Assembly (NCBI GenBank): GCA_038496445.1 | Contig: JALMLS010000480.1 | Location: forward strand, 124,001 to 188,000 | Source of the DNA: Trichosphaerium sp. ATCC 40318 | Taxonomy: Eukaryota; Protista; Tubulinea | Length of the DNA: 64,000 nt | Direction: 5' to 3' | In this document: positions 4,998 to 58,088 of the stretch, piece by piece | Position numbering within the stretch: position 1 is the first letter of the stretch | How the letters are laid out: every line of letters starts with the position of its first letter | Translations under genes and position numbers: made by a program | Notes under the pieces: generated by a model | The model's input: only the letters and a program-made list of their open reading frames with translations | Databases searched by the model: none | Told to the model about the DNA's origin: nothing

Positions 4998-7900
4998 TTA
5001 TTTTATGGAGTTGATTCGATAGACTACATTGATGTTGTTTTCGACATTCTCCGTGTTCATGAAAGCTTGTTTCATGAGTGAGATTTTGTGCACTTTGACA
5101 TGTGCTATGGTATTAGCTAACAACCAAGTTTTGTTCATTTGTGTGTTGTGAATTTCTTCATGTTATTGATGGAGTACTCTTCAAAATACCTCTTGGCTAC
5201 AAGTATTGTTGCATGTGCTAATAAAGGGCAATAAGTGAAATTGATTATTTTGTTATATAAAATACAGTATCGAACTAAAGTACTACAACACTTACGCTTC
5301 GGACTGTACTCATCTTCAAAGGAAAATGGCTTTATTTCTTTTGATATCTTGTACTGTTTCTTCCAGTTTGTAACTTCTTTTTCTTTTATGGGTTGTATTG
5401 TTAGTTCCTTGAATAGCAACAAACACCAAGTTAGTACAAAAAGAAACAAGTTTACGTCATACGTCAAAAAAGCCAAATGTGACGATTGGTTCAATCCGAG
5501 GTTTTTTTGGTATTGGTTCCATGCTTTGAACAGGAAGTGTTTGGAGTTGCTCATGTGGTTGAACTGGTTCCTGGAACCAAGCGGATCGCTCCAATGGATT
5601 GTTTTCCTTTAAAACACAATTAACAAATGTGCCATTCAACAAGATATATTTTGATGCACTGTCCAGTCCAACAAAGCTATAAATGTCTTGTTTATATATA
5701 TTGGTGGTAAAGTACCTTTGATATGTTCATATGGGCATTTGAAGGTGCAACAAGTTTGCTCAATGGGAAAGTCTTGAACCAAAGAGGTTTCCAATATTCG
5801 TTTTTAAAACAAACATTACGATAGTACTTGTTCACACTACCAAGTTGACATAGCCCATGTGCATCAAGATAATCCACAACATGGAGTCTTATCTCATATG
5901 GCATTTGTTCAAAAACCTGTAAAACAAAACAAATCAACAACCAACACCACAAGCAACAATTAAAAAAGTACTTACTGTAATCTTCAGTGATGAGTTGAAA
6001 CATTTAAGCCAGAAACAAAAGTTGTATCTTCCGCCAGATGTTATACGCTTTTTTGAGGGTTCTCTATGTCCTGGATAAACAATGGCATAGCATGGTCTTT
6101 GTTCAACAATAACATCAGAGTCATTGTCTCTTGGGAAGACCAATTCACCACCTTAAACAGTCAACCAAATGAGTCAAAAAAAAAGTACTAGGTCAAAATC
6201 AAAAGTACCTGTACATCCTGTAAAAGTTCCCAAACATATATTTACTGTATAGTCACTGGATTCAACATCAAGATTATGCAAATTAGTATTACGTTCATTA
6301 AAATACCGAATCGAAGCATCAGTGCCTTGCAATACTTCATGTTCTGAAAGACCATATAGAGTATGAATAATTTTACTAACAATATCACCACACACGCTCT
6401 AGAATAAGATTAAGCAAATGTTGTTTGAAATACAATTGCCAAATGGTACACGTGTACATACCTTAATAAAGTTTGAGAATCCATATTCCTTCAAAACCAG
6501 TTCATTTGTGAGTGGCAGAAAAGATTTGTTAATATTTAAAGTTTCACAACTCTTCACATTGTTTTCCTATTATTTCGAAGGTATATATATCTTTGTCGTA
6601 GATTTCCATCATATCTCTTGTTGGATAAACACCAGACTTAATAGAATCAAACACAGGACATTGACTCACATTGGCGGCGAAAAAATTAAGTAAATCTGGG
6701 GATAGTGGCTTGTAGATATTTTTCATGACGTTAAACTCATCAATTGCTGTATTTTCAAAGGTAGGGTCTTTAAGTCTAAGTAATGGTACTTTATCACGTC
6801 TTGGAAGCTTATCACGTGTTCCTATTTTTAAGTGAGTGAGCAAACATCAAGAAGCAGTGTTGAAAGTTTGAAATAAAATCAGTACCTGTTGGTTCAAAAG
6901 TCAGCACAACGAGTTTGTTCTTATTGTTGTTGTTTGATACTGTAATAAGCTTATTCTTAAATCCAACAAATGAAGTCAGCTGCACTTGTCTCCATATCCA
7001 GAATATTTCGGTTTGAGAAGTAGAGCAACAACACAAGTCGCCACCAAAATATCCTGAAAATCTATAGCCAATAGCTTCCGCTTGCCTGAGGTAAAAGCTT
7101 AGATTAAGTACTGCTGCTGTTCTATTACGTACTGTGCTGTTAGGAATATGCATGCGTCTTGATGAACATGCCATGAGCTTAAGCAGTAGCCAATAGGTTT
7201 ATTCCATGTTTTTTCGCACCTCTAGTAAGTTAGATATTGAACACTGAACATTGCAAAACCACGTAATACTACAACAAAAAAGTTACTTACGTGTTCTTCA
7301 ATAAACGGATATCCATCTCGCTCAACTATGACTTCATCGACTGACCTCATTTTACGAATGCTTGTAAAAGGTAATTCGACTGTTTCTGAAACAGTGTTCC
7401 CATTCACAAACTTTCGTACTGACTTAGGAATTGTTGAAAAACAAAGTCAATCGTACCTGTAGTTGGTGTCCAAACGGACCTCTTATCCAACATATAGAAT
7501 CAACACAATAGATCTCTCCACCGGCATATATATTTCTAGGAGGCGAATACATTAGGAAAATAAAGTTGGAGAGCAGGTAATGGAGGACGTGCAGATTAGA
7601 GGGTAAAAAGGAAAAAGTGTTCAAGTCGAAATACCAAATCTTTAATGTAGTCGATAAGATTAAGACATCATCAATGATGCCAGCACTTGTATAGAATAGA
7701 GTGCTGGCATCTTTGCCACGTGGGATCTATGTTAATATGTTAGTACGAAGCTATTTGTTAAAGATAGTACTTTAATGTCCTTGAAGTCGTATAATCTCAA
7801 ATCGAGTACTTTTGGATTACTATTACTGCTAAAAACTAAAGCGTCATCGTTCCAAAAAACAGCCATAGTTACAGGGGACTCCAAGGTTTCTTTGGTATTG

Positions 7901-9004: not shown

Positions 9005-10779
9005 GTTGAGGAGTTGTTGTCTGATATTGAGTGTTTTCGTTATGACTGTTTTTTCTCGTACATAAGCACTGTATCACAACTTGCTTATCGGCCGAAGATT
9101 GCGGCCAATGTATTTCACTGCTTCGATCGAATCTGTTGTCGTCACGTTCGCTAAACATCGCTACACTGCTGTCGCTTCTTCCAACACAACATTGTTTTGT
9201 ATGCGATGTCAGTACTGTAGCTAGCGCAAGTTAAGATGTGAACTATCAAAATGTTGCGTTGAACTAGCGGTGCTTTTACGTTGTCAATCAGGTATGTCTT
9301 TAAAAAAACACGATGTCAGCGACAACGTTAAAGTGTACTTTGATATTTCACAACTATTTTTCCGCAGCCCGCATGTTGTGAACACATTTTACTCAAACTA
9401 GCGCAAAAATGTTTCACTTGATGTTTTATTTTTAGAAGCTATAACCGACAAAGTTAAAAATGAAAATCAGCAACAAAAAGTAGCCCGTCTTACTGATTAC
9501 ACTGCTGTCTACTGATTTTGATTTAAAAAAGCTTGGTCACGTGTTTAAAAAAGACAGAAATGGGCAAGCACAGCCTTCAAACATACTTTTTTTTCTCTAC
9601 AATTGATACTGCGAGTACTTATTCTCAAGCCACCAGGATTGTGATACGACAAATAAATTGAGTTTCTAGTACATCCAGCGCTACCATAATACAGTAGGCA
9701 GCTATTACTGCCAGTGCAGATTGGCCCAAATAACCATTACCAAACATCCAGAGTGGGCATTTAACGGATAACAAAAAACACAAGCTTCTGATATTTAGGC
9801 ACGTAGGAGATCCATGCATGGCTACTTATATGCCTTTCAGAAGCACTGCAAGCGAGTTAAACAAGTAAACATGCTAAGGTTCAAAGGTGACCTGATAATC
9901 GCAATGGAAATGATGACAGTTTTTGAAGATATTTCTTTTAGCTCCAAATAGGCGACTTTAAGCATTAGGAACTGAATTGTGACAAAAACACTGAAATGAA
10001 CTAACTTATGGCACAAGATATAGTCAAATCAAGGTGTTATCGCATATCACCAGCTAGATATTGACCTAGCACCAGAAGTTGTACTTTGTGGAGGTCAGAA
10101 GACAGCACCGAGGTTTAATAAAGTTGAAACTAATCTTTGTTTCGTTGTATCATCAGTTGTATGGAAGCCAAATGTGATTGAAGTAGTTTGTTGATAAACC
10201 CAATTTAATAAACCTGAGTTGTCAAGGTCTTTGCGCAATCTACGGTGCTAGTGTCACACGACAACAAAGAACAACACCACATCTCTCAAAAGGTTTACAT
10301 CATCAACTTTAACGAGTACTCTTTCGATTATGAGGAATTTATCATACTAGAATGAACAAAAATTTGTTGGTATCTAACACAACAGCAAATACCAAAGCGC
10401 AACTGTCACTCATGAGCAATTCAATCAATGACACATTACGATAGAAAAAGTTTTTTAATGTAATGTAATTTGTACAAGAGATCAATCCAATATGGGATGG
10501 TCTCCTGCTACGTTGATCCAGTAGTTGCAGCCGAGTGAGATGGACTCTCCCCTTCAATATGGTAGTGTTGGACCAATCTAATGCTTTTAAAACACTCAAA
10601 ATACTTCGTCAATTTCTGCTTCTGAAGGCTAGTTGGTTATAGGCGGTTAAAATGTGCTCAATAGTTGGCACATTTAAAATCTAAGCGATTTTTTGGACAA
10701 GAACTGCAGTCAACTTAATTCAAATTGTGTTTAATGTGTTACTTAATTTAGACTGGCACTGTGATCACGTTGTATCAAA

Positions 10780-11793
10780 ATGAACAAAAACAGCGCATTC
10801 TTTGATGAGATACCTGTTGAAGTCATTGTTCATATTCTACAGTTTGTTTCTATTGTATCTATGCATTCTGTTGTACATACCTCTAAATTACTTTCAAATA
10901 TTGCAAAACAGCACATGGGATACGCTAACAGGAGAAAAATAGTAATAGAGGAGGGAAACATGCTCAAAAAGTTATTTAAGACATCGCCTCGTCTCATCAA
11001 AGAAAACACGATTACTATCAAGTTCCGTATTAAACAAAAGCATTTGAAGTACCTACAAGGAGCGTATGCCCTTGAAATACGTACAGAATTTGGTACAATT
11101 AACTTTACTGACTTTAAAGTTGCTGATGGGATAGACTTTCAATATTGTGATTCTGTTTCTAATAAACACCTTAAACAGCTCTCTGGGATTAGAAGAATAA
11201 ATCTAAGCAGTGATGGTAGAATGATAAGCTCGGGCTGTACTTCTTACCCTCGTAATTGGCGTTCAGGTGTTACAGATAAAGGAGTTAAAGCATTGGCTGG
11301 TGTTCATACAATAAACCTTTCTGATTTATTCAGTACAAGAATTACAGATAAAAGTATTAAAGCATTGGCTGGAGTTCATACTATTGGTTTACGTGGTACA
11401 AGAGTTACAGATGAAGGTGTTAAAGCATTGGCTGGAGTACACACTATTGATTTAAGTATTACAAGTGTTACAGATGAAGGTGTTAAACCATTGGCTGGAG
11501 TTCATACAATAAACTTGAGGTGTTGTTTCAAAGTTACAGATAAGGGTGTTAAAGCATTAGCTGGAGTTCATACTATTGACTTACATAGTACAAGAGTTAC
11601 AGATGAAGGTGTTAAAGCATTGGCAGGTGTTCATTGCATTGATTTACGCAGCACAAATGTTACCGATGATGGTATAAAAGCACTAGTGGGCGTGCACACA
11701 ATTATTCTTACTTACACAAACGTTACTGACGTGGGCGTAAGATTGCTGGGTAATGCTGTATCTAGTGGTGATCACATGTTAATAAGATTTTAA
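10780..11793 (+). CDS. Intronless F-box / leucine-rich-repeat protein, copy A (7 tandem LRRs of ~21 aa)
   Basis: F-box FDEIPVEVIVHILQFV...TSKLL; repeats VTDEGVKALAGVHTIDLxxTx; uninterrupted 337-aa ORF. Confidence 0.9.
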   Translation: MNKNSAFFDEIPVEVIVHILQFVSIVSMHSVVHTSKLLSNIAKQHMGYANRRKIVIEEGNMLKKLFKTSPRLIKENTITIKFRIKQKHLKYLQGAYALEIRTEFGTINFTDFKVADGIDFQYCDSVSNKHLKQLSGIRRINLSSDGRMISSGCTSYPRNWRSGVTDKGVKALAGVHTINLSDLFSTRITDKSIKALAGVHTIGLRGTRVTDEGVKALAGVHTIDLSITSVTDEGVKPLAGVHTINLRCCFKVTDKGVKALAGVHTIDLHSTRVTDEGVKALAGVHCIDLRSTNVTDDGIKALVGVHTIILTYTNVTDVGVRLLGNAVSSGDHMLIRF

Positions 11794-17849: not shown

Positions 17850-18867
17850 CTAGCAGAACCTAACCCAAGATTTTAAGTCCAATCTCTTTTTAAGACCTCT
17901 AAATAGATAAAATGTTAGAATTGCAAAACAAAGTAACACGTGAAGTAAATGGAAGCTACGTACGAATGACCAAAAGAAGCAGCATGATTACAAATTGAGC
18001 TGACAGTCCCGCTGTATTCAATTTGAAATACAGCCTTGTTACGGTTAATAAAAGGAGCGTATGACCCGCATTCATTGTATTGTTTGCATTGTTCATTAAC
18101 AACAAAGTCGTAGTAGTTCACTAAGTTTGGAACTTGTTCAACACTGTTTTTGAGCCCAATAGCCAAGTCAAGCTTATGCGCTTCATTAGCCATCCATCTG
18201 TTGTAAGCTAGTTGGTGCGACTTTCTCAAAGGAAACCCTGTAATAGCTTAGACTGATATTAAAAACATGAGAGTGTACGCACCACTTGGGTTGGTGTAAG
18301 CGTCAACGTTATCTGGATCAACAGCGTCACAGCGTTTGTTCTTTGCAAGTCTAAGTCTAGCTCGCATTATAGGGGCAAGGGTAGAGATCTTAGGTGACGG
18401 TAAGACAAAAAAAAATGAAGTGTGTACCTTTCTAATGTCAAGCCATCTCTCACCAGGCCAACCACTTAACGGACTTCCCAAGACACTTGATGGAAACCTT
18501 CCAGCGTCGCTTCTCCAGTTTTCATAAGATCCAGCACTAAAGTAACATACTACTTTACGACCAGCGTTATGAAGGCTATCAATGACAGACTGAGGTGTAT
18601 CGAAGAGGTCAATGTCATACATATCAACTAGCGGAAAATTATTAGTCCGCTACTTACCAAAATCAAGGAAAGACAAGATACAAAAGTGTTCACTTACCGT
18701 TGTACGAAGTAACGATGTTACCTTGAAGCTGTATTTGCCATGTCATTCCAGCAGGGAATGATGTACGGCTAAGCGAAAAAAAATCGGTTTACATCACGTT
18801 GTTCTAAAGGATAACCGTACCATAAAGCAAAGGCAGTAAGACACGTGAGTAAGATAAAAAGCTTCAT
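17850..18867 (-). CDS. Secreted GH114 endo-alpha-1,4-polygalactosaminidase
   Basis: Signal MKLFILLTCLTAFAL; motifs WQIQLQG, YDIDLFD, VVCYFSAGSYENWRSD, GWPGERWLDIR, CDAVDPDNVD, IGLKN, VNEQC..YNEC, KAVFQIEY; ends LKKRLDLKSWVRFC*. Confidence 0.92.
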
Positions 18868-30545: not shown

Positions 30546-30881
30546 TAGTTGTCACTTTTTTGAATTTCTGTTTTGTCTCAACAACCAGCAGTCACCTAAA
30601 ATGCGATTGGATTCTTTTGAATAACTGTTGCTTTTAATTTAAACCTTACTTGATAACCGTTTAGTCAAGTTTACAAAACAATACCTAGCTAAACCTTGTT
30701 GTTTGTTTAAAGGTTATCACTTCTGTGTAAGTCCTTTATTACCTGCGCACATCATACTTAATTGCCCACCGCCACTGCTTCTCCCCATATCCTATAGTTC
30801 GGTATGTGGATAGATAGTCTGGCTCCAACATCCACCTAAGTTTAAGGGACCCATAAGCTAGCACGTGTATTTATTTTATTT

Positions 30882-31300
30882 CAAAGGAAGACAATCCATT
30901 GGAGCGATCAGCTTGGTTCCAAGGAACCAGTTCAACCACATGAACAACTTCAATATTCTGTTCAAAATATGGAAGTACGAGAAGACAACTTTTTCTTCCT
31001 TTTATGGTATGAGGCAAAGACATTTTTTGCTAAATTCTTGCTTTCTCGGAAATTCATTGCTATTACAGAAATCCAGGTCACAAACTGGAAGAAACAATAT
31101 AAGATATCGACACAGTCTAGGAATTTTAGGACTATGGGCCCTTATAAGAACTGTAAGTGCTTAGAAGTACTAAAGTTTGCATTGCTAAGTTAACTTGTTT
31201 TTTTTAGCTGCTACTGGTGAGAGTTTTGATGAGTGTTCATCACTCGCAAATAAAAATATATTGAACACTGCTGTTAATATAATCATCAGTCACAAATAAG
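30882..31300 (+). pseudogene. Frameshifted inverted copy of the 3' exons of the 4998-8603 gene
   Basis: KEDNPLERSAWFQ, +1 frameshift, EPVQPHEQLQ...VTNWKKQYKIS; matches the reverse complement of ~5190-5613; intron positions retained. Confidence 0.88.
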
Positions 31301-31887: not shown

Positions 31888-34800
31888 TTAGAATTCGTTA
31901 TCAACAGTTGTAGCTGTTTTTTGTGTTGCTGTCAAGTCAACACCTGATTGAGGTTCTAAATAGTTTTTAAGTTAGTAACCAAAGAAAATTAGAAAAAAAA
32001 AAGTAGCAGTTGCTTACCTGTTGCACTTGCTGAGTGTTGGGTGTTGAAAGTAGGCATTTTAGCACCTCCATAGAACCATTGACATTTTACAATGAACAAC
32101 GCATTGATAGCAAGAGCTATAAAAGAAGAGTAAGGTCAAAAAATAAACAAAGTATTTCAGATGAAGAAAAAAGAAATCAAAACAAATGTGAAGTTGATTG
32201 GCCAACTCTTCGTTCTCACTTTCTCTTTGAAGATGAAGTGTTGGCAGTGGGAAGTCTGTGTTTTTACTGACAGTTATATATAAGGTACCTGCGCCTAGCA
32301 TAAGGAATATTGTGAAGAGAGCAAACTTTGTGAATCTGTTCATTTCAGGTGCGTATATTGCAACGCAAATGATTGCGAAGAATATCACGTTGTATATTGC
32401 GAAGAATATTATTTTGGATTCGTTATATCTCTGTAGTGGTATATTACGAACTCTAAAAGCAATAACAGCACCAATGAGAAGGAGTACACCCTTGGAAGAA
32501 GGTAAGCAAGATCCAAGAAAAATAGTAAAAAAATAAGAAAAAAAAACCATTGGCGTACGTTTACTGCTATAATGGCGTATACCAATGCGTTAAATAGTGA
32601 GTTATAATGACACTCATAGTGATTATAAGATATTCTATACGGATCAATAACAACAACTTGCTTGCCAGGGTCACCCCAAACGGTCTTTGAAAAAAGTTAA
32701 TAGACCTATTCACACAAATGTCTTTTGTACCATTATGATTAACACTACGACGTGAAGAGCTAATAATCCACCAACCCATGAAAGTACTTCTAAGTTAGAT
32801 ATTTTAATCTTATCAACATCTCTCTTCCACATTCTCTCTATACGTAATGTCTAGAACATCATAAGCTCCCGCAAATGTAAAAATTTTTTGATGAAAGAAA
32901 AAAAACAGAAAAAGATGATTTGCTCGCTTCTGCCATTTGCAGTACACTCATACATGAATTGGTTGTAAGGTGAGGGAAAAGGTGTAACAATAATCATGAA
33001 GGTGAAAAGATTTGATGGCGATGAAAGACTGTACCTTTGCGAAAAAAGGAGCGAAAAGAAGAATGAAACCAATATCTACCAACCAAGGACGAAGAGTACA
33101 TGTAACATCATTGACGACGTTTGGAAAGAAAGTGAACACACTGGCGTATATAACAATACTTCCAAATAGTATAAGGTACATGAAGGCAGGGGAAGCCGCC
33201 TGAACGAAGTAAGTCAAAAACAAAGATGTGAACTTAGGAAAGAAAACTGAAAAAAAAAAGGACGTACAATGAACACTTTCTTAAGGTTCTCACTTAGACC
33301 AAAAGTAGTGGCAACGAACATATATACTCCCCAGAATATACTAGAAATAATGAATATTACAGCCAATATCGCTACAAAGTATTCCGTCCAGTGACCTTGA
33401 AGGGTAAGAGAAAAAACTTTAAAGTTTTTTGTTTCAACAAAAACGAAATGAGACGTACCGAACTCTGGGTTGAGTACACGCTCTGACCAAGTTGGCATAG
33501 GATAGACTACAGCTTGTTCTTGTACTGCAAGTGGTGCTATTGTTACTCGTTCTCCGTTCACGAACTGCATAAGAACCTTCTCACGCTGCTGTTCTCCTTG
33601 TGCTCCCCATGAGATACGTCCAACTATAGTGTCATGTTTAGACCTGAATCCGGCACGGTAGACCTCATCTTGTAGAGACAAGAATCCGTTATCTTCAACA
33701 GTCTATACAAAGCGCGTGTAAGTCAGTGTAGAGTTAAAAAAAAAGCTGCAACGAAGTTTTTTTTGTTCAAGTTTGTGAAACGATGTTAAAAGGAAGTTAC
33801 TGCTTACAATGCCGTTGTTACAACTTCCATTCGTTCCTTCAAGCATCAACCTTCCATTTACATCAATCTAAATAAAGGTAAATCACTTTTTATTTATGTG
33901 TCGTTTAAAATCACGTGTGCGTACGTCAAGGTTAAACGATTGTGAAACATCCTCTACAGCTCTTTTAAGAACAAGAGCACCGATTATAGGGTTGAGTTGT
34001 GTTGACGTTAGAGGTTCCCCAAAGCGCGCCTCGAATTCTTTAGATACTTCTGAAAGCAGACCTAACTCTTCTGTCCTTGGGTAGTCCATTTCATGCTCAA
34101 ACTAGAACAAACGCGTTAAAGGCAGAAAAAAAAGATCAAAAAGTCGGACAAACAATTTTCTTTTTCTGCGGCAAAAAAATTTATCTTCTAGCGCTAGTTG
34201 GAAAACTTGCGAAAGTTCGGATCAATCTGCCGATAACAAGGAAGCGAGTGTTTCCTTAAAATAAAAAAAAATTTGGTCGTTAGGTTTTTGTGAACTGAAT
34301 TCAGTCTTTAAAATGAAGTACTCCACAAATAACTGCAGTAGACACAAGAAGGAAATTCGGCATAGCAAATTCTGTTGAGTTTTTTTTAGGGAGAAAATGG
34401 AGATTGACAGAAAAAAAAATCCAATAAAAAAACATTGACGTACTGCTGAAACACCCATCCTATAGTTAAGCATATCATCGTCTAAGTCGAAACCATAGCT
34501 TGTAGCTGGACCAACACGACCGATGTAAGCTCTAGGTGTATAGTCTATTGACCTGTACAAGTCCAAGAACCAGTTTGCATCATTTGTTGAAGTATCGCAG
34601 TACATCCAAACATCAGGGTCTTTTATGCTCATGTCAATTGCTGCTTTTCTCATTTCGATTCGAGCAGTCTCGTTGCTATTAATCCAACCACTTTGATCTA
34701 AAGTGACAGGTAAGGACAAGGAATGGTTAAACCACAAGTGGTTACCTGGCATAGAAATGTATCCTTTAAATTCAAAGCCGTGGCGCTGCATGAAATCAAG

Positions 34801-36223: not shown

Positions 36224-39200
36224 ATGGCGTCCAGGCCGATTCGTTTTAGCTTCAGGAAGATACCTAATACACGTAAAACAACGTAACACTACTTTAAGCC
36301 TAATGAACCGTAGCCGAGCTCAAAACTGCTATTGGATTGCCACTTGGGTTTTGTTTTCGCCCATTAGTACCTGTTGAAGGTGCGAAGGTGTTATACGTGT
36401 CATAATACGCTTACTGTTAAACCAAAGCGGGATCACTTAGAAGTATACCTATTAGCGCTATTGCGCGTTGTAAGTCATGTTACGCTTATATTAACAAGTT
36501 ACGTCGTAAAATCGGTTAATAATCTCATTTATATGACACTTTGTGTCTGAAACAGCTCTCCTTTGACTGCTTGATCGCTCACACCTATATATAAAAAAAA
36601 ACACGGCGTACAGACGTTTTTTTGTACAAGCGCGTTTAAAACGTAGCCAAAGCGACCCAAATGATTTGTATGATACTGAACTAACGTTATATAAGGTTAT
36701 GTTATTTTTCTGAAGGCACATGGCACTGTTCGTTATGTGGAGAACGCAACATTCCTCAAACACGTGAAAACAGGTACAGTTTTTTGATCAGGAATTATAA
36801 GTTTCTAAGTTCGATAAAAAAAAACCGACACAAAACCATCCCTAGTGTTGCACTATTGCTTTAAAACGAATGACAATATTCGTTTTGTTATTGAAGCGAA
36901 TTTCTTTAAATTATTTAAACAGTGCTCTGAGAGAGGGGCTTATGAAGAATTGAGTTTTGGTTTTTTTGAACAAAAGAGAAAATTTTTATTTTGTTTTTCG
37001 CTTTTTCTCTTTTCTCTACTCACTCTTACATGATACTTTATTAGATATACAAGTTCTATTGATTTATCAAATCTACCAGAGCTTCAGTACAACTTTGTAG
37101 AATACTCAGCGGATGAGAAAAACGAAAAAAATCAAAGTCCTGATGAGCAAATTGAGCTTCACACAGGAGACATACCTATAATCATTGCACTCTTGGATAG
37201 GACAATGCCTAAACCATGGTTGAAAGCGTGTACAGATGCCCTTATAGAAGGGTTAAAAGGTTAGTAAAACAAGACTACGCAAGCGCATAAATCTTGCTTT
37301 CTGGAAATCTGTTGACTGTTTGCACTTAGTTTTACCACCAACTTGTCTTTTTGGCCTTGTATCGTTTGGTAAGGTTGTAGGAATACATGACTTGCGATCT
37401 TCTGTACCGATGGTACATGTACGTTCTGTTGAGAGCTCAGTTTTTAAACAACTTGATCGGCTTTTTGACAAACGATTAGGAACTCAGTGTACCAGAAGAA
37501 GGTAATCTATCTGTTCCTATTGATGATGTTTTACCTTTATGTGATTTTCTTGTACCTGTTGGTGATCATCTTGATGAGATAATATCATCATTGAACTCTC
37601 TTGAGTGTTTACCATTAGAAAACAAACATGAAAGAGGATTTGGTTCAGCTGTTTCTGGTTTAACTGATTATTTATCTGTCTATGAAGATGTACTAAATGG
37701 TATGCTTCTTAAACTCCTCTGAAATGGATGGACTTAACGATTGGATAAGCGCTATATAGCTGAGAGTGCTACATAGTTGTTTAAGAATCCAACACAGTTC
37801 GCTTGTCAAGTGCTTTTTTTCCTATTTTTTTCTTGTTTTTTGTTCTAATATTTCGATTAGTGCGTATCTTGGCTTTTCCTTGTGGTGCTCCAAACCATGG
37901 GATTGGATCTATACGAACAATTGAGGATATAAAAAGTGATTATCCTGTCCTACCACAACCAAACTCGTTTTACAAGTACAACCTTTATCTTTTTGTTTAT
38001 CATTTTGCTTCAAACTTTTTATGTACCTTCTTCTCTTCCTAAAATAACTGTCTGACTAGAGAATTATCAAATCGTATCGTTAGTGTTGGTGCAACTTTTG
38101 ATGTATTTGCAGTACACTGTAATCCTTTGGGACTTGCCAATTTTTATCCTCTTGTAAAAAACACATGTACGTTGGTTTTCTTTAGTGTTTGAGTGGTTAT
38201 GAACCTTCTGGGTTGTATACAGTCTCTAGACTGATATTATAGTTTATGTATCATTGGATGTTCTATTAATATGCTCTAGGTGGTGTATTGAATCTGTACA
38301 AAGATGATGTTGACTCACAAAAGAAAACGCTTATTTCAGATGTAAAACACTTTCTTGAAGAAATACTATGCTTTAATGGCGTAATGCGTATCAGAACATC
38401 GGATAATGTTAAGGTACATACATTTCTAAAACCTTGCTACATTGATTTTTTGCTACTAACACATGACGAACCTTCAAAAGTACTGGTTGTTTTCCTAACT
38501 TTTTATTTCAGGTTAGTTCTGTTTATGGTCATCTTGTGCCTTTTCCAGAGCATGATAATCTTTATAGAGTTCAAGGATGTGACCCTTCTAAGGTATGTAA
38601 TACTGATACCTATTTGTGTAAGATAGTTAAGTAATTAATATTGTAGTGCTTTTCAGTACAACTTGACTATGTCGATGCTGATGGTATTAGAAAAGGAAAT
38701 CATAATGTTCCAGTTATACAACTTGCTTTTGCTTATACATACTTACCACCTCTTACAAATACTAAAAAAGAACGTTTCAGATTACATAAACGTGTCAGGT
38801 ACGTAATAACACACCCTCATGGCATCAACACTAAAAAGGAAAAAACTTGCAAAAAAAAACCTTGTTGTTCGGTTTCTTGACTTTTTTTTGACTGATCCTG
38901 ACTGTTTAGGGTATACACATTTGCTACCGAAGTAGCTTTAAATGCATCACAAGCTTTAACACTGAGAAGCGCTATAGATATTGATGTAATGTTCGCTCTT
39001 TTAGTTAACAAGTTGGAACGTATTTGCATATCTCAAGGTATTGAAGAAGCTCGCCAAGCCCTTATAGAATGGATAAAACGTTTGCTACCAACAACCAGAA
39101 AAGTTGCCAACTTGGTTCACTTGCCTGTATTAGTATCAGCGCTATTGGGATCAAAGCTTTTTGGAAGGAACGAAAACATTGATAATGAGACTTCTATTGA

Positions 39201-39859
39201 TCTTTGGGTAGCACACTCTCATAAGGCAACTGGTTTTGGACCTAGTACTCTGAGAGGTTTGTATGTTCCTGGTGTTTGGAAGCTTGATGATTTTAACACA
39301 CAAATGACACGTGGTACACGTGTTTCTTATACTAGAAAGGAACTTGCTGATGACAACAAGATTTACATAATTGTTGAACATAGGGTACGCATTGCGTAAA
39401 CAAGATTTTTTTGTTTGTCTCTTTTTTGTAACCTGTCAGATTTTGACAACTCAGATTTCCCTTGGTATAATACTAATATTTGTGTGTATCTTTTTTATAC
39501 ATCATTTGTCTTTTAGCAAATGGATGCTATGAGTTTTGCTCTGCCAAAACTTTTTTTCTTGCTTTTTTCTTGTTTTCACACCTTTTTGAACTTTTGCTTC
39601 TGTTTATGTGCTTAATACTAAGTTTACTTGTAAGGTTGCAACTATATTTTGCCGTGGAGAATGTGATGTTTGGCCACCACCTGAAGGAACTCCTTTTTTA
39701 AGTCAACTGAACCACTTGAAACATTATAACCCTTTTGATATTGAAATACGTGTTCTTGGTGATGATGAAGAATCTTTGACTGTACTAAAAAATATTGATG
39801 AGAGTGTTAAGCTTCATGAAGAAAGATATATAATGTTCTTGCAGCAGCTAGAACTTTGA
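36224..39859 (+). CDS. Sec23/Sec24-family (COPII inner coat-like) protein, divergent
   Basis: MASRPIRFSFRKIP...LPLGFCFRPL; zinc finger RCKSCYAYIN...WHCSLCGERN; vWA trunk IIALLDRT...LFGLVSFG; FNGVMRIRTS; IQLAFAYT...VRVYT beta-barrel; helical and gelsolin-like C-terminus. Confidence 0.85.
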
Positions 39860-42218: not shown

Positions 42219-42739
42219 AATGACATAGATGTAATGCCAATAACACGTGGCTAAAAGCAAATAAAAAGTTGTAGTAAAATGTTGTACCTCAGTTGTTGTA
42301 TTGTTTAAGTACTCGATTATAGGCTTTGTAACTTCTGACAATGCAAGATAGAATAATAGGCAAAGCCATTTAGATTGTTTTAACACCAGGTGGTTGCATT
42401 ATAAACACGTGAACACCCTTCCGTAGAGATAGTATTCTTTGAACCGAACGAAAAAATATTACTTATGAAATACGACAAAGCCGAATACACCGTTTACTTA
42501 TCTCAGTATGTAGCAAAGCGGTCATCATGAGCATCACCTCAAGCACAGCGCGCATCATTGAGTTTGACAGGCAATATACAACGAACAAATTTTTTTCGAG
42601 AAATCCGTGGACCGCCCTTGCGCAAAGTCAACTTAACGCCTTTTCGTTGAAATTAGCAATTATTTTCTGGGTCCACTCAATTGGCAGCCTAAGCGATCAG
42701 AGTCGCGTGATTTTTAGTATCTGGTGTTTTACAAAAGAG

Positions 42740-44149
42740 ATGAACGAAAACAGCGCATTCTTTGATGAGATACCTGTAGAAATCATTGTTCACGTTCTAC
42801 AGTTCGTTTCAATGTTATCTATGCATTCAGTCGTGGGAACATCTAAATTACTTGAGAACATCGCTAAACAGTACCTTGGTTATGTAAATAGGAGAAATAT
42901 TGTTCTAGAGACGGAAGCAAAGCTGCAAAAACTTTTTAAAGAAGCACCTCATCTCATCAAAGAACATACGTTTTTTATCAAGTTTTCTATTCAACAAAAG
43001 CATCTACAGTACCTACAAGGTGTGTATGCACTTGTCTTTCATAAAGGGTTTGGTAAAATAGACTTTACTGGCTTGAATATCGTTGACGGAATATACTTTC
43101 GATACTATAAGTCAATCAAGGACAGACATCTTAAACAGCTTGCTGGAATTAACAGAATTTATTTAGCTCGTTCCAGTGTTAAAGATGAAGGCATTAGAGC
43201 ATTGGCTGGTGTTCATTCAATTGACATATCGTACTGTCAAGTAACAGATGAAGGTGTTAAAGCATTGGCTGGAGTTCATACAATAAACTTGGGGTGTTGT
43301 TACAAAGTTACAGATAAGGGTGTTACAGCGTTAGCTGGAGTTCATACTATTGACTTACATCGTTGTATTGTTACAGATGAAGGTGTTAAAGCGTTAGCTG
43401 GAGTTCATACAATTGACATATCGTACTGTCAAGTAACAGATGAAGGTGTTAAAGCATTAGCTGGAGTTCATAAAATAAACTTGGGGTGTTGTCATAGAAT
43501 TACAGATAAGGGTGTTAAAGCATTAACTGGAGTTCATACAATTGAATTACATTGTTGTAATGTTACAGATGAAGGTGTTAAAGCATTAGCTGGAGTTCAT
43601 ACAATTTACTTAAATTATTGTAACGTTGCAGATGAAAGTGTTAAAGCTTTAGCTGGAGTTCATACTATTGATCTATCTAATACTGCAGTTACTGATGAAG
43701 GTGTTAAAGCTTTAGGTGGAGTTCATACTATATCCCTTAGCTCAACTGCAGTTTCTGATGAAGGTATTAAAGCACTGTCAGGAGTACATTCAATTGGTCT
43801 TTTCAACACTAAAGTCACAGACAATGGTGTTAAAGCATTGGCTGGTGTTCACTTGATTAATTTATATAACTGTAATGTGACGGATGAAGGTGTTAAAGCT
43901 TTAGCTGGAGTTCATACCATTAGTCTATCTAATACTGCAGTAACAGATGAAGGTTTAAAAGCATTGAAAGGAGTTCATATTATTAATGTTACCAACTGTC
44001 CTGGTGTTACAGATAAGTGTGTTAAATCACTAGTCGATGATGGGACAATAGATATCTCGAATACACCTCAAAGAAATATTACAGCTGAATTAATGCAATC
44101 GTTTAATATTAATCCAGACTTCAGCTTGCTATTTGTTAATACGTTGTAA
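42740..44149 (+). CDS. Intronless F-box / LRR protein, copy B (13 tandem LRRs)
   Basis: MNENSAFFDEIPVEIIVHVLQFV aligns with the starts of copies A and C, so ATG 42740 is preferred over 42527; 13 repeats of 21-22 aa. Confidence 0.9.
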   Translation: MNENSAFFDEIPVEIIVHVLQFVSMLSMHSVVGTSKLLENIAKQYLGYVNRRNIVLETEAKLQKLFKEAPHLIKEHTFFIKFSIQQKHLQYLQGVYALVFHKGFGKIDFTGLNIVDGIYFRYYKSIKDRHLKQLAGINRIYLARSSVKDEGIRALAGVHSIDISYCQVTDEGVKALAGVHTINLGCCYKVTDKGVTALAGVHTIDLHRCIVTDEGVKALAGVHTIDISYCQVTDEGVKALAGVHKINLGCCHRITDKGVKALTGVHTIELHCCNVTDEGVKALAGVHTIYLNYCNVADESVKALAGVHTIDLSNTAVTDEGVKALGGVHTISLSSTAVSDEGIKALSGVHSIGLFNTKVTDNGVKALAGVHLINLYNCNVTDEGVKALAGVHTISLSNTAVTDEGLKALKGVHIINVTNCPGVTDKCVKSLVDDGTIDISNTPQRNITAELMQSFNINPDFSLLFVNTL

Positions 44150-48841: not shown

Positions 48842-50488
48842 ATGGCCAAAATAGGTTAGTATTAGTTGTAAACCCATATTTATCACTTAAAACAACGAAC
48901 TAGCGCATTTAGATCGCAACTTTGAGCTGTTTTAAACGAACTTTTAATTAACCGCTTTAATTTACTCCCATACGCGTTTATTTCATAACAAAAGCTTATA
49001 CGCGCCCTTTTAATACTGTTTTAAAATTATTCAACAAAGGTAAGCGCGAAGCTAACTACGACTCAAGATTCGGCGATTGTACTAGATTGTGGCTCTCTTG
49101 AATCGCGTGTTGGGTTTTCTGGAGATTCTGAGCCGAAAAGCGTCTTTCCATCTGTTGTTGGTACGCCAATAAACCAAGTAGTAATGGTGGGTATGCCACA
49201 ACGTATGGCCTTTGTTGGAGATGAGGTATTTAGTAAATGTGGCATACTTCAACACAACTATCCTATAAAGAATGGAGTCATATCAGATTGGAATAAAATG
49301 GAGTTTTTGCTTGATTATGTCTTCAAATATAAACTACAAGCAGACTCATCAGATAACCCTATTTTAATGACAGAACCTGCGTTAAATCCAGTGCAAATAA
49401 GGTACGTAAATCATGTTCTTTGAGAGCAGAAAATAATGAGAAAGTTTTTTTTTTTCATTGAAACTAAAAAAAGCAACAAAATCGGCAATCATCTTTCGTT
49501 CCTTAGTTCTTGCTTGAAGGCTTCCACCTCTTTTATGTATTTTTGATTTGTTTTCTCTTATGGATATTCAGTTCTTGCTGATACCTTTTTTTTGAGGGAG
49601 CGAACAACAACGTTAATGTTTGAGACATATAATGTTCCTTCATTTGGTTTAATGAATAAGGAGGTGCTTGCTTTATATGCCACAGGGGAAACAAATGGTT
49701 TAGTCATAGATATAGGTGACACGCTTACCCAAACAGTACCTGTTTACAAAGGACGCTCACTACAGAAATCGGTAGAACAAGGATTTTTCGGTGGAGCTGA
49801 TGTAACTGAATCTTTAAGGACTCAACTCCAAGATGCAGGAAGAGGATACTCGTTCACAACTACAGCTGAGCGTTCCCTTATCAGGCATATCAAAGATACT
49901 CTATGTTATGTGGCTCTTGATTACGATAAAGAATTACGTAGGGATGACAAAGAAATTGAAAGCGTTTATAAACATCCAGGTGGTTATGATATTATCACTA
50001 ATCACGAAAGATTCAAGGCTTGTGAAGTTCTTTTCAATCCAAATAAGACATCCGATTCACAACAGTTACTTGGTGTTCACACCATGGCTTGTGAATCCAT
50101 TCAGAGATGTGATGTTACTATCCAACCTGTATGTGAAACGTCATTTAGTTTGTTTGTTTTTTTCTTTTCCAAAAAAACCTCCTTGCTGATAAGCTTCGAC
50201 CCATAGCATCTGATTTGTTTTCTGATCTGTTTTTTTTAGACTATTTGTAGTAATATACTTGTAACAGGAGGTTCGAGTGTTACAACAGGATTTTCAGAGC
50301 GCCTACAGATTGAACTTTGCAAAGTCTTACCAAAAACAAAGGATTACAAGGTTGTTTCTACCAATAAGAAGTATCTTTCTTGGGTTGGTGGTTCTATGTA
50401 TGCAAGTAATAATGATACCAAGACTGTGTTTATATCCAAAGAAGAATACGATGAATACGGGCCTGGTATTGTTAATAAAAAACGTTGA
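48842..50488 (+). CDS. Divergent actin-related protein
   Basis: IVLDCGSLESRVGFSGDSEPKSVFPSVVG, YPIKNGVISDW, ILMTEPALNP, MFETYNVP, LYATGETNGLVIDIGD, ERFKACEVLFNP, SWVGGS, EEYDEYGPGIV. Start exon tentative. Confidence 0.88.
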
Positions 50489-51189
50489 TAAAATTTGTCT
50501 AAATAAATGTTCTCCGCATAGGATAGACGTTGAAGAGTGACTTTGCGTAATTTCGAAGCTGTCTCAAAAGCGATGCTGGCCCCAAAGCCGGGTCAAAAAA
50601 ATAGAGCCAGATGCTGTCCAAAGTACAAAGCATGTGTAGCTGTAAAGCATATTGAGCAAACAATTAACTTCTGATTTTTGTCAACTTTTCTCAATCATCT
50701 CATTGTTACTCAAGATAAACTCCGGAATATTACATGTAGATTTCAGCATCGCTTCATTGTTACAATATCTACCTGCATCTAAATACTACTCTATGTCTTG
50801 TGGTAGATACACATGTTTAGTGTGAACACTGAGCAATATCAGTACTTCAGATATACTACATGACATAGCGTACTAAGGAGCGCAAATTACAGCTACTATT
50901 GGCGTTTTGGGTTGATTTAGTAACAAGACTGCACTAACGACTAGTTGGAAATTTCTTTCTTACTTTCTATAAAACGCCTTTTTTATGGCTGTGAGGGCGT
51001 TGTGTTATATAATTATCACGTGATTGGACGTTTTTAGGAAAAGACACTTGTTGGGAAACTGAGCAGCTAACTAAACGTTAAGACTAATGAGGGATGAATT
51101 CTAGTGGAAAGAAATCATTTCCCGAGTCATGTGCACCATTTTTTTAAAAAGTTCTTCATTCGCACAACAAGTCAACAAATCATTTATTT

Positions 51190-52467
51190 ATGACTCCTAT
51201 ACGTGTACTACTCACTATAGCTCTTTGTTTCGTGATTTACACTACCCACGCTACGTTTGTATTAAAGGAAGAAGCAAATACCACGTGTATCAATAGGTAC
51301 GCGCCTAGAGATTTATTTTAAGGCATTTTGAGACTTTGCTGCTTTTTTTTGTTGTTCAAAAAAAAAGTAGGTCATCAAACTTAATAGAAGTGCTCACAGC
51401 GTCAACATACGATGAACTACCTTTGACTACTCGCTATTGGGTAAACGTGGAGTTTAATGGAACTAGAGAATACCACAACCTTGTTTGCGTGTGGTGTCAG
51501 AATAGCGACGTATGCGACCAGTGCTATGAAGCGTTATCCGATTTTATATGGCAAGAAAGTGGCTTGCCAATGACGAAAACAGATTTGTTTATGATAGGCG
51601 CTGGGAATGATACAAAGACTTTTCTTAAACAGTATTGGAAGAATTCACGGCCTAAGTTGGCTTTAAATACCCATTGTATCGAAAAAAGGGCAGGAGGTTA
51701 GTGAAGAGAAAGTCAAACTTATTTCTGAAATACAGATCTTTATTAACTGTTGTTTGAATAGGGTTTTTCGATATTAATTGCAGTTCAACAAGTACTGTAG
51801 TATGTAAGGATAATATAACAACTGGAATACAAATTGTTACTGGGAATATATCTATTATAGACGCTGATGTTGTGCTGGGTGGTACTGAACGAGATTGTTC
51901 TCACTGCGTTTGTTAATATTTTTTTCAAGGAGTGGTCACGTTCGAGAATACAGTAATAGAAGTCAACAACTCAACTATTGCTATCACAAGATGCCCTGAA
52001 TTTGAGGATAACGTGACATTCGATTTTGGAAATGTAAGTATAAATAGATTACTCAACACGTGAAAATCTAATCAAAATAAAAAAAATAGGAAACATCAGA
52101 AATAATGTTATTCGAGTTTAATGAAACATGTTCAATTGACATTGACAAAATATCAGTTTCTGAAGGTTCATGCTTGAAATTAGGTACATTCGTTATTACG
52201 TATGAAAATAGACTAACGTCTAACGCACAAGATAACAACAGATTGAGCCTCGTTGTATTTTTTGGAGATGATTGCGATACACTGAATTCAGACGAGTCTT
52301 CATTCCCGTTGATAGCAACTTGTTTGATAATAGTAGCTGCTATTATATTACTTGTGATAATATCTATGAGTATGGTGTATTTTGTACCTTCAATACGCCA
52401 CCATGTACTACCTTATAGTCGTACAAAGCAACATGTGAATGTTGAGCAAGACGATATACTAGAATAA
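51190..52467 (+). CDS. Type I membrane protein with C-type-lectin-like domain, tandem copy 1
   Basis: Signal MTPIRVLLTIALCFVI; RYWVN...FIWQESG...YWKNSRP...HCIE..GFFDINCSSTSTVVC (CTLD-like Cys/Trp spacing); TM LIATCLIIVAAIILLVIISMSMVYF. Confidence 0.65.
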
Positions 52468-53420
52468 ACATTAAATGTTGCGATATTTATAAATCAGACT
52501 TTTCCCTTCCTAGTAGACGGTCGAAGTCAACTAATTTCGGGTTACCTCTTCGTTGTACCAAATAGTACGCAAGATATTAAAAACTTAATACCAGAGCCAA
52601 AAAAAAGAGCTATGTTCTGAGAACCCAAAACATCAATGAAACAAATATTTTTAAGTTTGAAAAAGTTGCATCTTCGTCCTTATGTACCGGCAAGAGGAAA
52701 ATAGAAATGTCAACATCACATCAAAGGAAACGAGCCTATCATAGTATTTTAAGGTGCTATAAATACTACACTAGCACCCTAAGGACCTGAATAAGTTAGT
52801 TCTTGCAAACCTGTCAGATTTTGAAAGAAGAACTAACTAAAGAGCTGCCATTGACTAAACTCGAAAATCAAAGTTTAAACTTGAAAGATACAGACAATAT
52901 CTCCTTTTAGGCGAACAGAAGCCGAGCATTTGATACATAATTCTCCTTCAATGTTTCCACCTCCTCAGGTTCGAATCTGTCCTTGATTAATTTCTTCACG
53001 TGTGGTATGTTACTCGTGCAGTTGGAGCGAAAATAAAACGAAGGTTGAGCGTTTAGTTCCAAGTACTGCATTCACGCCAATTTTGTGCAGTCTCGTACTT
53101 TTCGAAACATATTTCTGAATGTTGAATGTGATAACCAATTTATTTATCACGTGATAGGCTGCGAATTAACTGGTGGACCAGGCGACGCTGTTGTTGTCTA
53201 GTATGCAGTGAACTTAATTCCATATAATGTAAACTTAAGTTTAACATCACACTGAGTTCTCTCCGAGAAGTACAGAGACTCCTTGCCAGGTATCTCTTTA
53301 CACTTGCTAACGTTGAAATTCATGAAATAAATTCTCGTGGGAAGGAAATTTCATATCCCGTCATGTGTACGTTTTTATTAAGCTCTTTATTCGCACAACA
53401 AGTCAACAAAGCCCGTATTT

Positions 53421-54690
53421 ATGACTCCTATACGTGTACTACTCACTATAGCTCTTTGTTTCGTAATTTACACTACCCACGCTGCGTCTGTGCCAAAAGT
53501 AGAGGCAAACACCGCGTGTATCGACAGGTACCTGCGTAAAAGGTTTATTTTAAAGCAGAAGAGTTTTGTTGTAATACAGAATTAGGCAATCAAGCTTAAT
53601 AGAAGTGCTCACAGCGTCAACATACGACGAACTACCTTTGACGACTCGCTATTGGTTAAATGTGGAGTTTGAAGTAGCTGAATCTGAACCATATGACAAT
53701 AATGCTTGTGGTTTATGTCAGAACGGAAACTCATGTGACACGTGCTATGAAGCGTTATCCAACTTTATATGGCAAGAAAGTGGCTTGCCAATGACGAAAA
53801 CAGATTTGTTTATGATAGGCGCTGGGAATGATACAGAGACTTTTCTTAAAAAGTATTGGTTGAAAAATCGGCCGAGGCTGGCTACAGATACTCATTGTAT
53901 TGAAAAAAGATTTGCTGGTATGCGAAGAAAACCTGAACTTGAACTTTGTTTGGAAATTTTGTTGACTTTGTTTGAATAGGGTTTAATGATATTAAGTGCA
54001 CTGTACGAAGTACAGTAGTATGTAGCGATAACGTAACAGAAGGAATAAAGGTTGTCACTGGAAATATATCTATTGTAGATGCTGATGTTGTTGTATTGGA
54101 TGGTACGGGAGTGTATTCTCTCGCAACTAATAGCGTTCCAAGGTCTGGTTACATTCGAGAATACAGTAATAGAAGTTGACAAGAACTCTACCATTTCCAT
54201 CAATAAATGTCCTGAGTTTGAGGATAACGTGACATTCGATTTTGGAAATGTAAGTATAAATAGATTTCTTAACACGTGAAAATCTAATCAAAAAAAAAAA
54301 AATAGGAAACATCAGAAATAATGTTATTCGAGTTTAATGAAACATGTTCAATTGACATTGACAAAATATCAGTCTCTGAAGGTTCATGCTTGAAACTAGG
54401 TACATTCGTCGCTAATCTTGAAAAACACACTAACGTTTGACCCATAAGATAACAACAGATTGAGTCTTGTTGTATTTTTTGGAGATGATTGCGATACACC
54501 GAATTCAGAGGAGTCTTCTTTCCCATTGATAGCAATTTGTTTGATAATAGTAGCTGCTATTATATTAATTGTGATAATATCTATAGTTATGGTGTATTAT
54601 GTACCTTCACTACGCCACCATGTACTACCTTATAGTCGTACAAAGCAACGCGTGAATGGTGTTGTGGAGGAAGACGATAGTGAGCTATAA
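53421..54690 (+). CDS. Type I membrane protein with C-type-lectin-like domain, tandem copy 2
   Basis: Direct paralogue of 51190-52467 at an offset of ~2.23 kb, with the same exon structure. Confidence 0.65.
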
Positions 54691-54875
54691 TAAATGCTTG
54701 TAATCCTGTTTACTTCAAAAGTTTCCATCCATGCAAACCTTATTAGCATAATCACTAGTTTGTACGAGGTTATAAAGTATCAAAGCAACTTGCAAGCTTT
54801 GTGAAATTCGAAAATCAAATGCTGTCCAACTTTGATAAGTATTTCAAAGACTTGAATAAAGACAATGTCTCCTTA

Positions 54876-55171
54876 CTAAAACAGATTTGTTTATGACAGG
54901 TGGTGGGAATGATTCCAGGAGTTTTCTTAAACAGTGTTGGACGAACAAACAACAGAACTTGGATTCAAATACTTTGTGTTGAAAAAAGGTTGGCAGGTTT
55001 TGTGAAGAAAGCAATAATGTTCTGATCATTGATAGCAACTTGTTTGATAATAGTAGCTGCCATTATATTACTTGTGATAATATCTATAAGTATGTGCTTT
55101 TGTACCTCCAATACGCCATCATGTCTACCATATATAGTCTGTCGAAGCAAAACGTGGGTATTGTTGAGCAT
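54876..55171 (+). pseudogene. Internally deleted third copy of the CTLD-like gene
   Basis: aaaacagatttgtttatgacaggtggtgggaatgat... (lectin exon) fused to ttgatagcaacttgtttgataatagtagctgc... (TM exon), with frameshifts. Confidence 0.85.
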
Positions 55172-56595: not shown

Positions 56596-57014
56596 ACTCT
56601 CAACATTGAACAGTATGCTATTACGCTACTAAGACACGCACAATAAACACAAACAATTTAAAAAACCCGCCCGCTATTATTGTCCCCTCGTGAGTTTACC
56701 TACAAAACCTTCTCTACGTAGTACTTTCTCATCACCATTTCCATGATGGAGGCAACTACTTTCGAGGCGCCTTTTTTTACTGCTGTTGTGTTGGTGAGTT
56801 CAGGTTGGTGAAAAATACTATGAACACAAAGCCACGTGATTGTTAAAAACTAATCTACAGCATTTTTTGTTTGTCAAAGTCCACCAATGTTGTGTGCAAG
56901 GAAACTCAATTGTTTAAGTCCCGTGTTAAGTACAGAGCGATATATATTGTGTTTAAACCGGCGAGTAACCTAGCTATTAATTTATACACTGGCACGTGAT
57001 CAAGTTGTATCAAA

Positions 57015-58088
57015 ATGAACAAAAACAGCGCATTCTTTGATGAGATACCTGTTGAGGTCATTGTTTATATTCTACAGTTTGTTCCGATCAGATCTATGCA
57101 CGTTATAGTACATACCTCTAAATTACTTTCAAATATTGCAAAACAGCACATGGGATACGTTAACAGGAGAAAAATCGTGATACACAACAAAAAGAAGCTT
57201 AAAATGATGTTTCTGACATTGCCTCATCTCATCAAAGAAAACGTGATTGTTGTAAAGTTTCGTATTAAACAAAAGCATTTACAGTACCTACAAGGAGTTT
57301 ATGCCCTTGAATTACATGAAGAGTTACATAAGATTGACTTTACAGGCTTTAAAGTTGTTTATGGGATAGACTTTCAATATTGTGATTCTGTTTCTGATAA
57401 ACACCTTAAACAGCTCTCTGGTATTAGAAGAATAAATCTTAAAAAAAAAAAGCCTTATGAAGTAAAGGATCACGTTTATTACGTTGCTGCACGCCGTCTA
57501 AAAGTAACAGATAAAGGCATCAAAGCTTTAGCTGGAGTCAATCACATTGATTTAAGCCATACTTCAGTAACAGATGAAGGCATTAAAGCATTGGCTGGTG
57601 TACAATACATTGATTTAAGCCATACTTCAGTTAGAGGTGAAGGCATCAAAGCTTTGGCTGGTGTTTATTATATTGATTTGAGCCATACTTTAGCTACAGA
57701 TGATGGTATTAAAGCATTGGCTGGTGTTCATCACATTGATCTAAGCCATACATATGTCACTGATGAGGGCGTTAAATCATTGGCTGGTGTTTATCATATT
57801 AATTTAAAGTCCACTTCAGTTACAGATGAGGGTATTAAAGCTTTGGCTGGCGTTCGTCACATTGATTTAAGCAATACTTCAGTTACAGATGATTGTATAA
57901 AAGCGCTAGTGGGTGTTCACACAATTGATGTTACTCGTACAAAGGTTACAGATGAAGGTGTTAAAGTCTTGGGTATGGCTAATGTAATTAGGCATAGGTC
58001 ACCGCTAAGATATTATTGCGTTATTTGGAGTCTAGCTTACAGCATTGGCACTTCTAAAAGTGTAAGTGTCAGATACGAAATGGCTTAA
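57015..58088 (+). CDS. Intronless F-box / LRR protein, copy C (7 tandem LRRs)
   Basis: MNKNSAFFDEIPVEVIVYILQFV; VTDEGIKALAGVxxIDLSHTS repeats. Confidence 0.9.
   Translation: MNKNSAFFDEIPVEVIVYILQFVPIRSMHVIVHTSKLLSNIAKQHMGYVNRRKIVIHNKKKLKMMFLTLPHLIKENVIVVKFRIKQKHLQYLQGVYALELHEELHKIDFTGFKVVYGIDFQYCDSVSDKHLKQLSGIRRINLKKKKPYEVKDHVYYVAARRLKVTDKGIKALAGVNHIDLSHTSVTDEGIKALAGVQYIDLSHTSVRGEGIKALAGVYYIDLSHTLATDDGIKALAGVHHIDLSHTYVTDEGVKSLAGVYHINLKSTSVTDEGIKALAGVRHIDLSNTSVTDDCIKALVGVHTIDVTRTKVTDEGVKVLGMANVIRHRSPLRYYCVIWSLAYSIGTSKSVSVRYEMA

Follow-up and report, generated by a model that had tools for sequence, protein, structure and literature searches.

Genes A, B and C and other features of the window

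The window (the whole 64-kb stretch of DNA analysed here), which is eukaryotic but not human and in which long open reading frames (ORFs) are sparse, holds three paralogous genes on one strand, which we call A, B and C, each consisting of a single ORF (Table 1). All three encode a C-terminal leucine-rich-repeat (LRR) domain, matched by Pfam LRR_6 with E-values of 8.8e-19 for A, 6.1e-19 for C and 5e-42 for B, and built from a 21-residue unit of the form VTDEGVKALAGVHTIDLSxTx; counted by the pattern of the unit core, gene B has 14 such units. Outside these genes, a six-frame motif scan of the window returned only isolated single matches to the LRR motif, at 2924 (+) and 35647 (-). Gene C ends in a long and odd C-terminal tail.

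Among the other features of the window, the divergent actin-like gene provides a local reference for introns. The ORFs of the tandemly duplicated unit of ~2.2 kb gave no Pfam matches, and no matches were returned by the Rfam and tRNA scans of the window.

Table 1. Positions of the features discussed in the text (numbered along the window).
Feature	Position	Strand	Remarks
Inverted repeat, 61 nt	5572-5632 / 30861-30921		85% complementary; arms 25 kb apart
High-identity patch between A and C	10743-11205 (C: 56977-57440)	+	~463 nt; starts 37 nt before the ATG, ends at the 5' edge of the loop
Gene A	10780-11793	+	Intronless ORF, 337 codons; F-box-like motif, cryptic N-terminal repeat region, 21-residue loop, 7 canonical 21-aa LRRs, cap
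F-box-like motif of A	10801-10914	+	Residues 8-45; Pfam F-box 18.4 bits, F-box-like 18.5 bits
Loop A	11206-11268	+	21 codons, Ser/Gly-rich
Unit A2 with 7-aa linker	11269-11340	+	Not orthologous to C2
Units A5-A6	11467-11583	+	51-nt cores each 96% identical to B3 and B4 (43241-43357)
Dispersed paralogous segment	16444-16655 / 39143-39364		22.7 kb apart; blocks of 97%, 86% and 88%; another patchily similar gene pair
GH114 glycoside hydrolase match	18251-18622	-	Exon-sized ORF, 3.6e-39
7tm_3 match (family-C GPCR transmembrane domain)	32062-32550	-	ORF, 7.4e-11
Open codons upstream of gene B	42527-42739		71 codons, before the ATG aligned with A and C; resemble neither A nor C
Gene B	42740-44149	+	469 codons from the conserved ATG; intronless; ORF open from 42527
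Super-repeat in gene B	43131-43514		Three units, 192 nt, copies 84% identical; units 4-6 of A show the same a-b-c pattern
ARSS of gene B	43166-43177		Follows LRR 1
Unit B2	43178-43228		Regular unit after ARSS
Divergent actin-like gene	49068-50490	+	Pfam Actin 4.7e-40 on one exon; exons examined singly, not joined
Introns of the actin-like gene	49403-49596; 50130-50240		194 and 111 nt; GT..AG, long T tracts before AG
Tandem duplicate of ~2.2-kb unit	51141-52444 and 53372-54661		80-92% identical
Third, partial copy of the ~2.2-kb unit	54875-55094		66-nt stretch 92-97% identical
Gene C	57015-58088	+	Intronless, 357 codons; architecture and unit number as in A
Loop C	57441-57503	+	21 codons, Lys/Arg/Tyr-rich; first 11 nt all A (57441-57451)

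Protein family and predicted fold

The F-box-like motif of gene A covers positions 2 to 38 of the 43 in the Pfam F-box profile and scores below the cut-off of 20.5 bits; a sub-threshold match lies at the same place in both B and C. In the AlphaFold2 (AF2) model of A this region is drawn as three helices (residues 13-20, 25-32 and 36-45), and the models of A and C (mean pLDDT of 85 and 72, respectively) both show a regular strand/helix solenoid. A Foldseek search with full-length A placed FBXL2-SKP1 at the top (E=3.8e-13), followed by FBXL17-SKP1 and, lower down, by COI1-ASK1. All three genes lack introns and combine a borderline F-box with LRR_6 repeats in a fold like that of FBXL2 and FBXL17, and their products probably act as substrate receptors in SCF ubiquitin ligases.

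A word search with the whole of gene A found its nearest database proteins among protist transcripts, at most 56% identical and over the repeats only, with a common layout of F-box-like motif, conserved GY and repeats; a word search restricted to residues 1-165 of A found no relatives. The closest of these are two paralogous transcripts (P0001, L001 20-1234, and P0008, L002 70-1140) of the JGI/MMETSP sample 3300016894, which have in common a long N-terminal extension as well as the F-box-like/GY/LRR layout, but possess short linkers only. A 29-mer common to A, B and C was absent from the metagenome, genome and viral contigs searched, and a profile-guided locus search found no further family members. 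The lineage-specific family (21-residue LRR_6 repeats behind an N-terminal region with no word-search relatives) is of a familiar kind and, as far as our searches show, undescribed.

The pair of 21-codon loops

The original prediction had drawn attention to the junction between the N-terminal half and the first canonical repeat (which begins with VTDKG, at residue 164), where A and C, nearly identical just upstream, would each carry exactly 63 nt of unrelated sequence. Both halves of this description proved accurate. The two genes keep a single offset (46235 nt) all the way from the ATG through the last base of the loop. Upstream of the loop, A and C differ at 2 of 76 nt, or at 3 of 75 when the last base is included (the quoted stretch contains two differences and the third lies at 11205), which gives an identity of 96% over 11131-11205. 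The loops themselves are 30% identical over 63 nt, a value that a shuffle test does not distinguish from random (p=0.19), and in the 42 nt that follow, from VTDKG on, identity is 71%.

Gapped local alignment of loop A with loop C, on the same strand and as reverse complement, scored below the mean of the shuffled sequences. Since ungapped, gapped and reverse-complement comparison all show no similarity between the loops, the pair cannot have arisen from one loop sequence by inversion or by a double frameshift.

In each loop the coding frame is the sole stop-free frame of the six; the one exception is a minus-strand frame of C, in which the only stop sits in the 6-nt flank. At this base composition, we estimate that such a pattern would arise by chance with a probability of ~0.22 per loop. 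Since the coding frame stays open, the loops are apparently translated, and their equal length and open frames suggest a common origin and translation of both. The run of 11 A at the start of loop C encodes KKKK and is prone to slippage; poly(A) tracks within ORFs can stall ribosomes, and the run might affect the output of gene C.

We looked for donors of the loops within the window by blastn-short, the original prediction having proposed a search of the genome. For loop A the longest non-self match was 10 nt, and for loop C there was no long match among the matches listed. No LRR-like reading of either loop was found in any of the six frames, the protein local alignment of either loop with the repeat arrays was not significant, and k-mer sharing with the arrays was at background.

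In the AF2 models, the insert departs from the solenoid directly behind a beta-strand (residues 139-141) and returns to it ahead of the helix at 166-170. Confidence falls below a pLDDT of 50 at residues 148-159 of A and at residues 148-150 and 152-157 of C (where the loop is drawn as a low-confidence hairpin), and these stretches stand between confidently modelled repeats. Since some distant relatives have 10, 14 or 17 extra residues at the corresponding place after the strand, such inserts are a sporadic trait of the family and vary in length. Of the seven short linkers, two differ in length between A and C, whereas the 21-residue loop does not; this comparison hints, weakly, at a constraint on loop length.

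Divergence between A and C and its breakpoint

The high identity upstream of the loop belongs to a longer patch. Similarity starts 37 nt before the ATG and the 2 kb of either flank show no similarity between A and C and are unalignable, so the patch is a bounded tract of ~463 nt. Synonymous divergence (dS) is 0.23 over codons 1-142 and 0.14 over the last 25 codons before the loop, against 0.99 in the repeat region, and the step between N-terminus and repeats is highly significant (Fisher p=5e-7). The low value reflects recency and not constraint, since the same codons differ from those of B at a dS of 0.87-1.0. A maximum-chi2 analysis of all sites places the breakpoint at 11204/11205 (none of 500 permutations reaches the observed value), and when the loop is removed and the analysis restricted to third positions, it falls at 11202/11205.

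Beyond the breakpoint, the proportion of synonymous differences (pS) between A and C is 0.85, and thus saturated, in the core of the first unit beyond the loop, 0.53 in units 3-6 and 0.45 in units 7-8 plus cap. The p-distance between the loops (0.70) exceeds the third-position distance in the repeats (0.44) and the pS of units 3-8 (0.45-0.53), and equals the divergence of the adjoining unit. In the comparison of A with C, the ratio omega has a value of 0.26 for the repeats, which indicates that the genes are under purifying selection, 0.12 just before the loop, and 0.59-0.78 in part of the N-terminal half.

Since the synonymous breakpoint coincides with the 5' edge of the loop, the sharp contrast in identity marks a recombination or gene-conversion boundary and not site-specific hypermutation. 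A significant synonymous step, incongruence between segments of the genes (described below) and a tract bounded on both sides are the marks of gene conversion, and all three are present here. The original prediction, which attributed the contrast to a hypervariable loop replaced as a block or under extreme positive selection, thus stands in part: the insert is real, apparently translated, of equal length in both genes, unrelated in sequence, placed after a beta-strand and more diverged than the synonymous sites of most repeats, but the contrast does not point to hypervariability of the loop alone, given the dS step at its edge and the saturated unit next to it.

Repeat arrays and the register between A and B

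The gene tree switches along the sequence: the N-termini group as ((A,C),B), whereas the middle repeats of A pair with those of B. Many exact runs of 25-32 nt link the repeats of A and B and none link those of A and C. The unit after the loop in A (A2) is 67% identical to C2, against 88% to both A5 and B3, and the units of C resemble one another. Outside the patch, A and C are nevertheless collinear, with an equal number of units and 84% identity in their distinctive last unit.

The position of the loop relative to gene B depends on the register in which the repeats are paired. The best one pairs A2 with B3 (88% against 80%), with a summed identity over six units of 524, compared with 486-490 for the four other registers tried; it was returned by protein MAFFT and by the top blastn HSP, whereas DNA MAFFT (with B cut at 43400) pairs A2 with B2. 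In the A2-B3 register the loop stands opposite ARSS, the whole of unit B2 and SYCQ (25 aa), and in the A2-B2 register its 21 aa stand against 4 aa. The units of C do not discriminate between the registers. Consequently, the earlier statement that B has only ARSS at this position holds in the A2-B2 register and not in the better one, and the remark that 63 nt is the length of one LRR unit fits neither, since an extra unit would need 75 nt.

Origin of the equal-length, unrelated loops

The explanation that we favour, and hold to be somewhat more probable than not, is that the equal-length unrelated loops are an unconstrained insert that lies beside a gene-conversion boundary, as part of ordinary multigene-family evolution. 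A and C would be sister paralogues, each with a 21-residue non-LRR insert before the first canonical repeat, most likely inherited from their common ancestor, from which the identical length, position and open frame would follow; as the two genes are collinear outside the patch, with equal unit counts and a similar last unit, inheritance is the simplest source of the equal length. The insert itself would be a flexible surface excursion with no demand on its sequence. A recent gene conversion (~463 nt, from -37 to codon 142) may then have homogenised the F-box/N-terminal half of these old paralogues, stopping where homology stops, at the insert, and leaving the step from ~97% to random identity; such an end is expected, because conversion needs homology and the insert has none. 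On the 3' side, the divergence between A and C would be old or scrambled by conversion, with the repeats of A exchanging with those of B and the repeats of C being homogenised among themselves, and the unconstrained loop, lying 3' of the breakpoint, would have randomised.

The amount of divergence in the loop bears on the last step. Against neutral decay of the loop stand probabilities of ~0.01 at p=0.55 and of ~1e-4 (normal approximation) at the p-distance of 0.46 that is expected from the dS of ~0.7 at the 3' end. Neutral decay since the split of A and C therefore fits only if concerted evolution has kept down the divergence at the synonymous sites of the repeats; if not, the loop must have been replaced or have evolved faster. 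The retention of loop length while linker lengths changed also counts against a purely unconstrained loop. As an alternative for this step, the block formed by the loop and the next unit may have been replaced from an unseen paralogue or may be evolving faster, options which the three genes on which the whole comparison rests cannot separate; block replacement is kept in play by the excess of loop divergence over the synonymous divergence of most downstream repeats.

The strongest competitor gives the loop a function, as a specificity-determining hypervariable element, either replaced as a block (perhaps together with the adjoining unit) from paralogues with other 21-codon loops, or under diversifying selection on substrate recognition. 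The same excess of divergence agrees with this, as do the strict keeping of length and frame where other linkers changed length and the modelled position, which adjoins the concave face immediately behind a beta-strand. The long loops of F-box LRR proteins of the TIR1/COI1 type contribute to ligand pockets. Positive selection is also known to act on F-box families that have expanded (PMC8120010). Nevertheless, no donor was found among the matches listed for the 64 kb, no further copy came from any collection searched, the dS breakpoint alone explains the contrast with the upstream flank, and the models of the loop are of low confidence and its composition of low complexity, so that we regard such a role as unlikely. 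The fuller form of this idea is a shade less likely again: a 21-codon slot of an expanded F-box/LRR family, holding a recognition loop constrained in length and hypervariable in sequence, with blocks of loop plus repeat exchanged among many paralogues and the Skp1-binding half kept uniform by conversion. If it were true, the family would offer a germline-encoded way of varying ubiquitin-ligase targets, perhaps against parasites or symbionts.

Alternatively, the loop could be the wreck of an LRR unit, in the slot filled by B2 in gene B, which lost four codons and all of its repeat character by neutral decay of an unneeded repeat. The A2-B3 register, in which the loop faces ARSS, B2 and SYCQ, agrees with such a history, and A2 has the "b-type" signature (INL and a long linker) of B3, B6 and A5. 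Additionally, one DNA local alignment of loop A with a B unit is collinear with VTDEGVKALAGVHT (31 of 42 columns), at p=0.04 before correction for six tests. On the other hand, a profile test of the 63 nt that allows gaps is not significant for either loop (p=0.12 for A and 0.63 for C), neither the k-mer nor the protein-level comparisons rise above background or reach significance, and the register is one that the units of C do not single out; we consider this origin rather improbable.

Less credible still is pseudogene decay of A and/or C, with the loop as mere junk inside them. The raised omega in part of the N-terminal half could be read in this way, as could the 11-A run, the odd tail and the weaker AF2 model of C; however, ORFs of 337 and 357 codons have stayed intact in DNA of 36% GC despite a repeat dS of ~1, and the low omega in the repeats and just before the loop, together with the intact ORFs, makes decay very unlikely. 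Finally, the least plausible reading, that the 63 nt hold a short in-frame spliceosomal intron and that the divergence is intron divergence, fails because it works for A only: A has a GT at 11216 and an AG at 11265-11266, between which the removal of 51 nt would leave a normal 4-residue linker, but there is no in-frame GT..AG pair in or around loop C, both loops are open in frame, and the two introns locatable within the window (111 and 194 nt) have GTAYGT donors and long T tracts, neither of which the candidate in A possesses.

In our view, the main value of the case is methodological: where two paralogues switch from identical to unrelated, a synonymous breakpoint should be tested for before hypervariability is invoked.

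Comparison with known systems

The closest structural counterparts of A, B and C are the SCF substrate receptors FBXL2 and FBXL17, which the models resemble in having an N-terminal three-helix motif of F-box type followed by an LRR solenoid. The CC-type repeats of FBXL proteins are ~26 residues long, whereas the unit found here has 21; the F-box of the new genes also lies below the Pfam cut-off, and their N-terminal 165 residues have no word-search relatives. TIR1 and COI1 share with them the combination of F-box and LRRs and a non-LRR loop that leaves the solenoid after a beta-strand, a likeness of position only: the loops of TIR1 and COI1 are conserved and form a defined pocket, whereas those of A and C are unrelated to each other and modelled with low confidence.

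The original prediction had compared the loops with the inserts of lamprey variable lymphocyte receptors (VLRs) and the island domains of plant receptors. What is common to all of these is a non-repeat stretch that interrupts an LRR solenoid and differs among members, and neither comparison goes further. A VLR gene is incomplete in the germline and is built up in somatic cells from cassettes that flank it, whereas A, B and C are complete ORFs and no donor cassettes were found in the window. An island domain is a folded module, roughly 36-70 residues long, of an extracellular receptor; the insert of A and C has 21 residues, its pLDDT falls below 50, and it sits in a protein whose N-terminus is F-box-like and which does not have a receptor architecture.

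A better parallel for the distribution of divergence is given by the tandem LRR paralogues TLR1 and TLR6, in which gene conversion homogenises one region while the remainder diverges (PMC2077338). There, as here, one region of neighbouring LRR paralogues is near-identical by conversion and ends at a sharp boundary (PMC2077338), but the converted part of TLR1 and TLR6 is C-terminal (from LRR 16-19 through the TIR domain), whereas in A and C conversion would have affected the N-terminal F-box half, and its boundary lies at a non-homologous insert. Should the loop turn out to be a real specificity element, the pair would represent a compact form of modular evolution, in which the adaptor-binding half is kept constant by conversion while the substrate-binding half is diversified, in parallel with TLR1/TLR6 and with nematode and plant F-box families that evolve fast.
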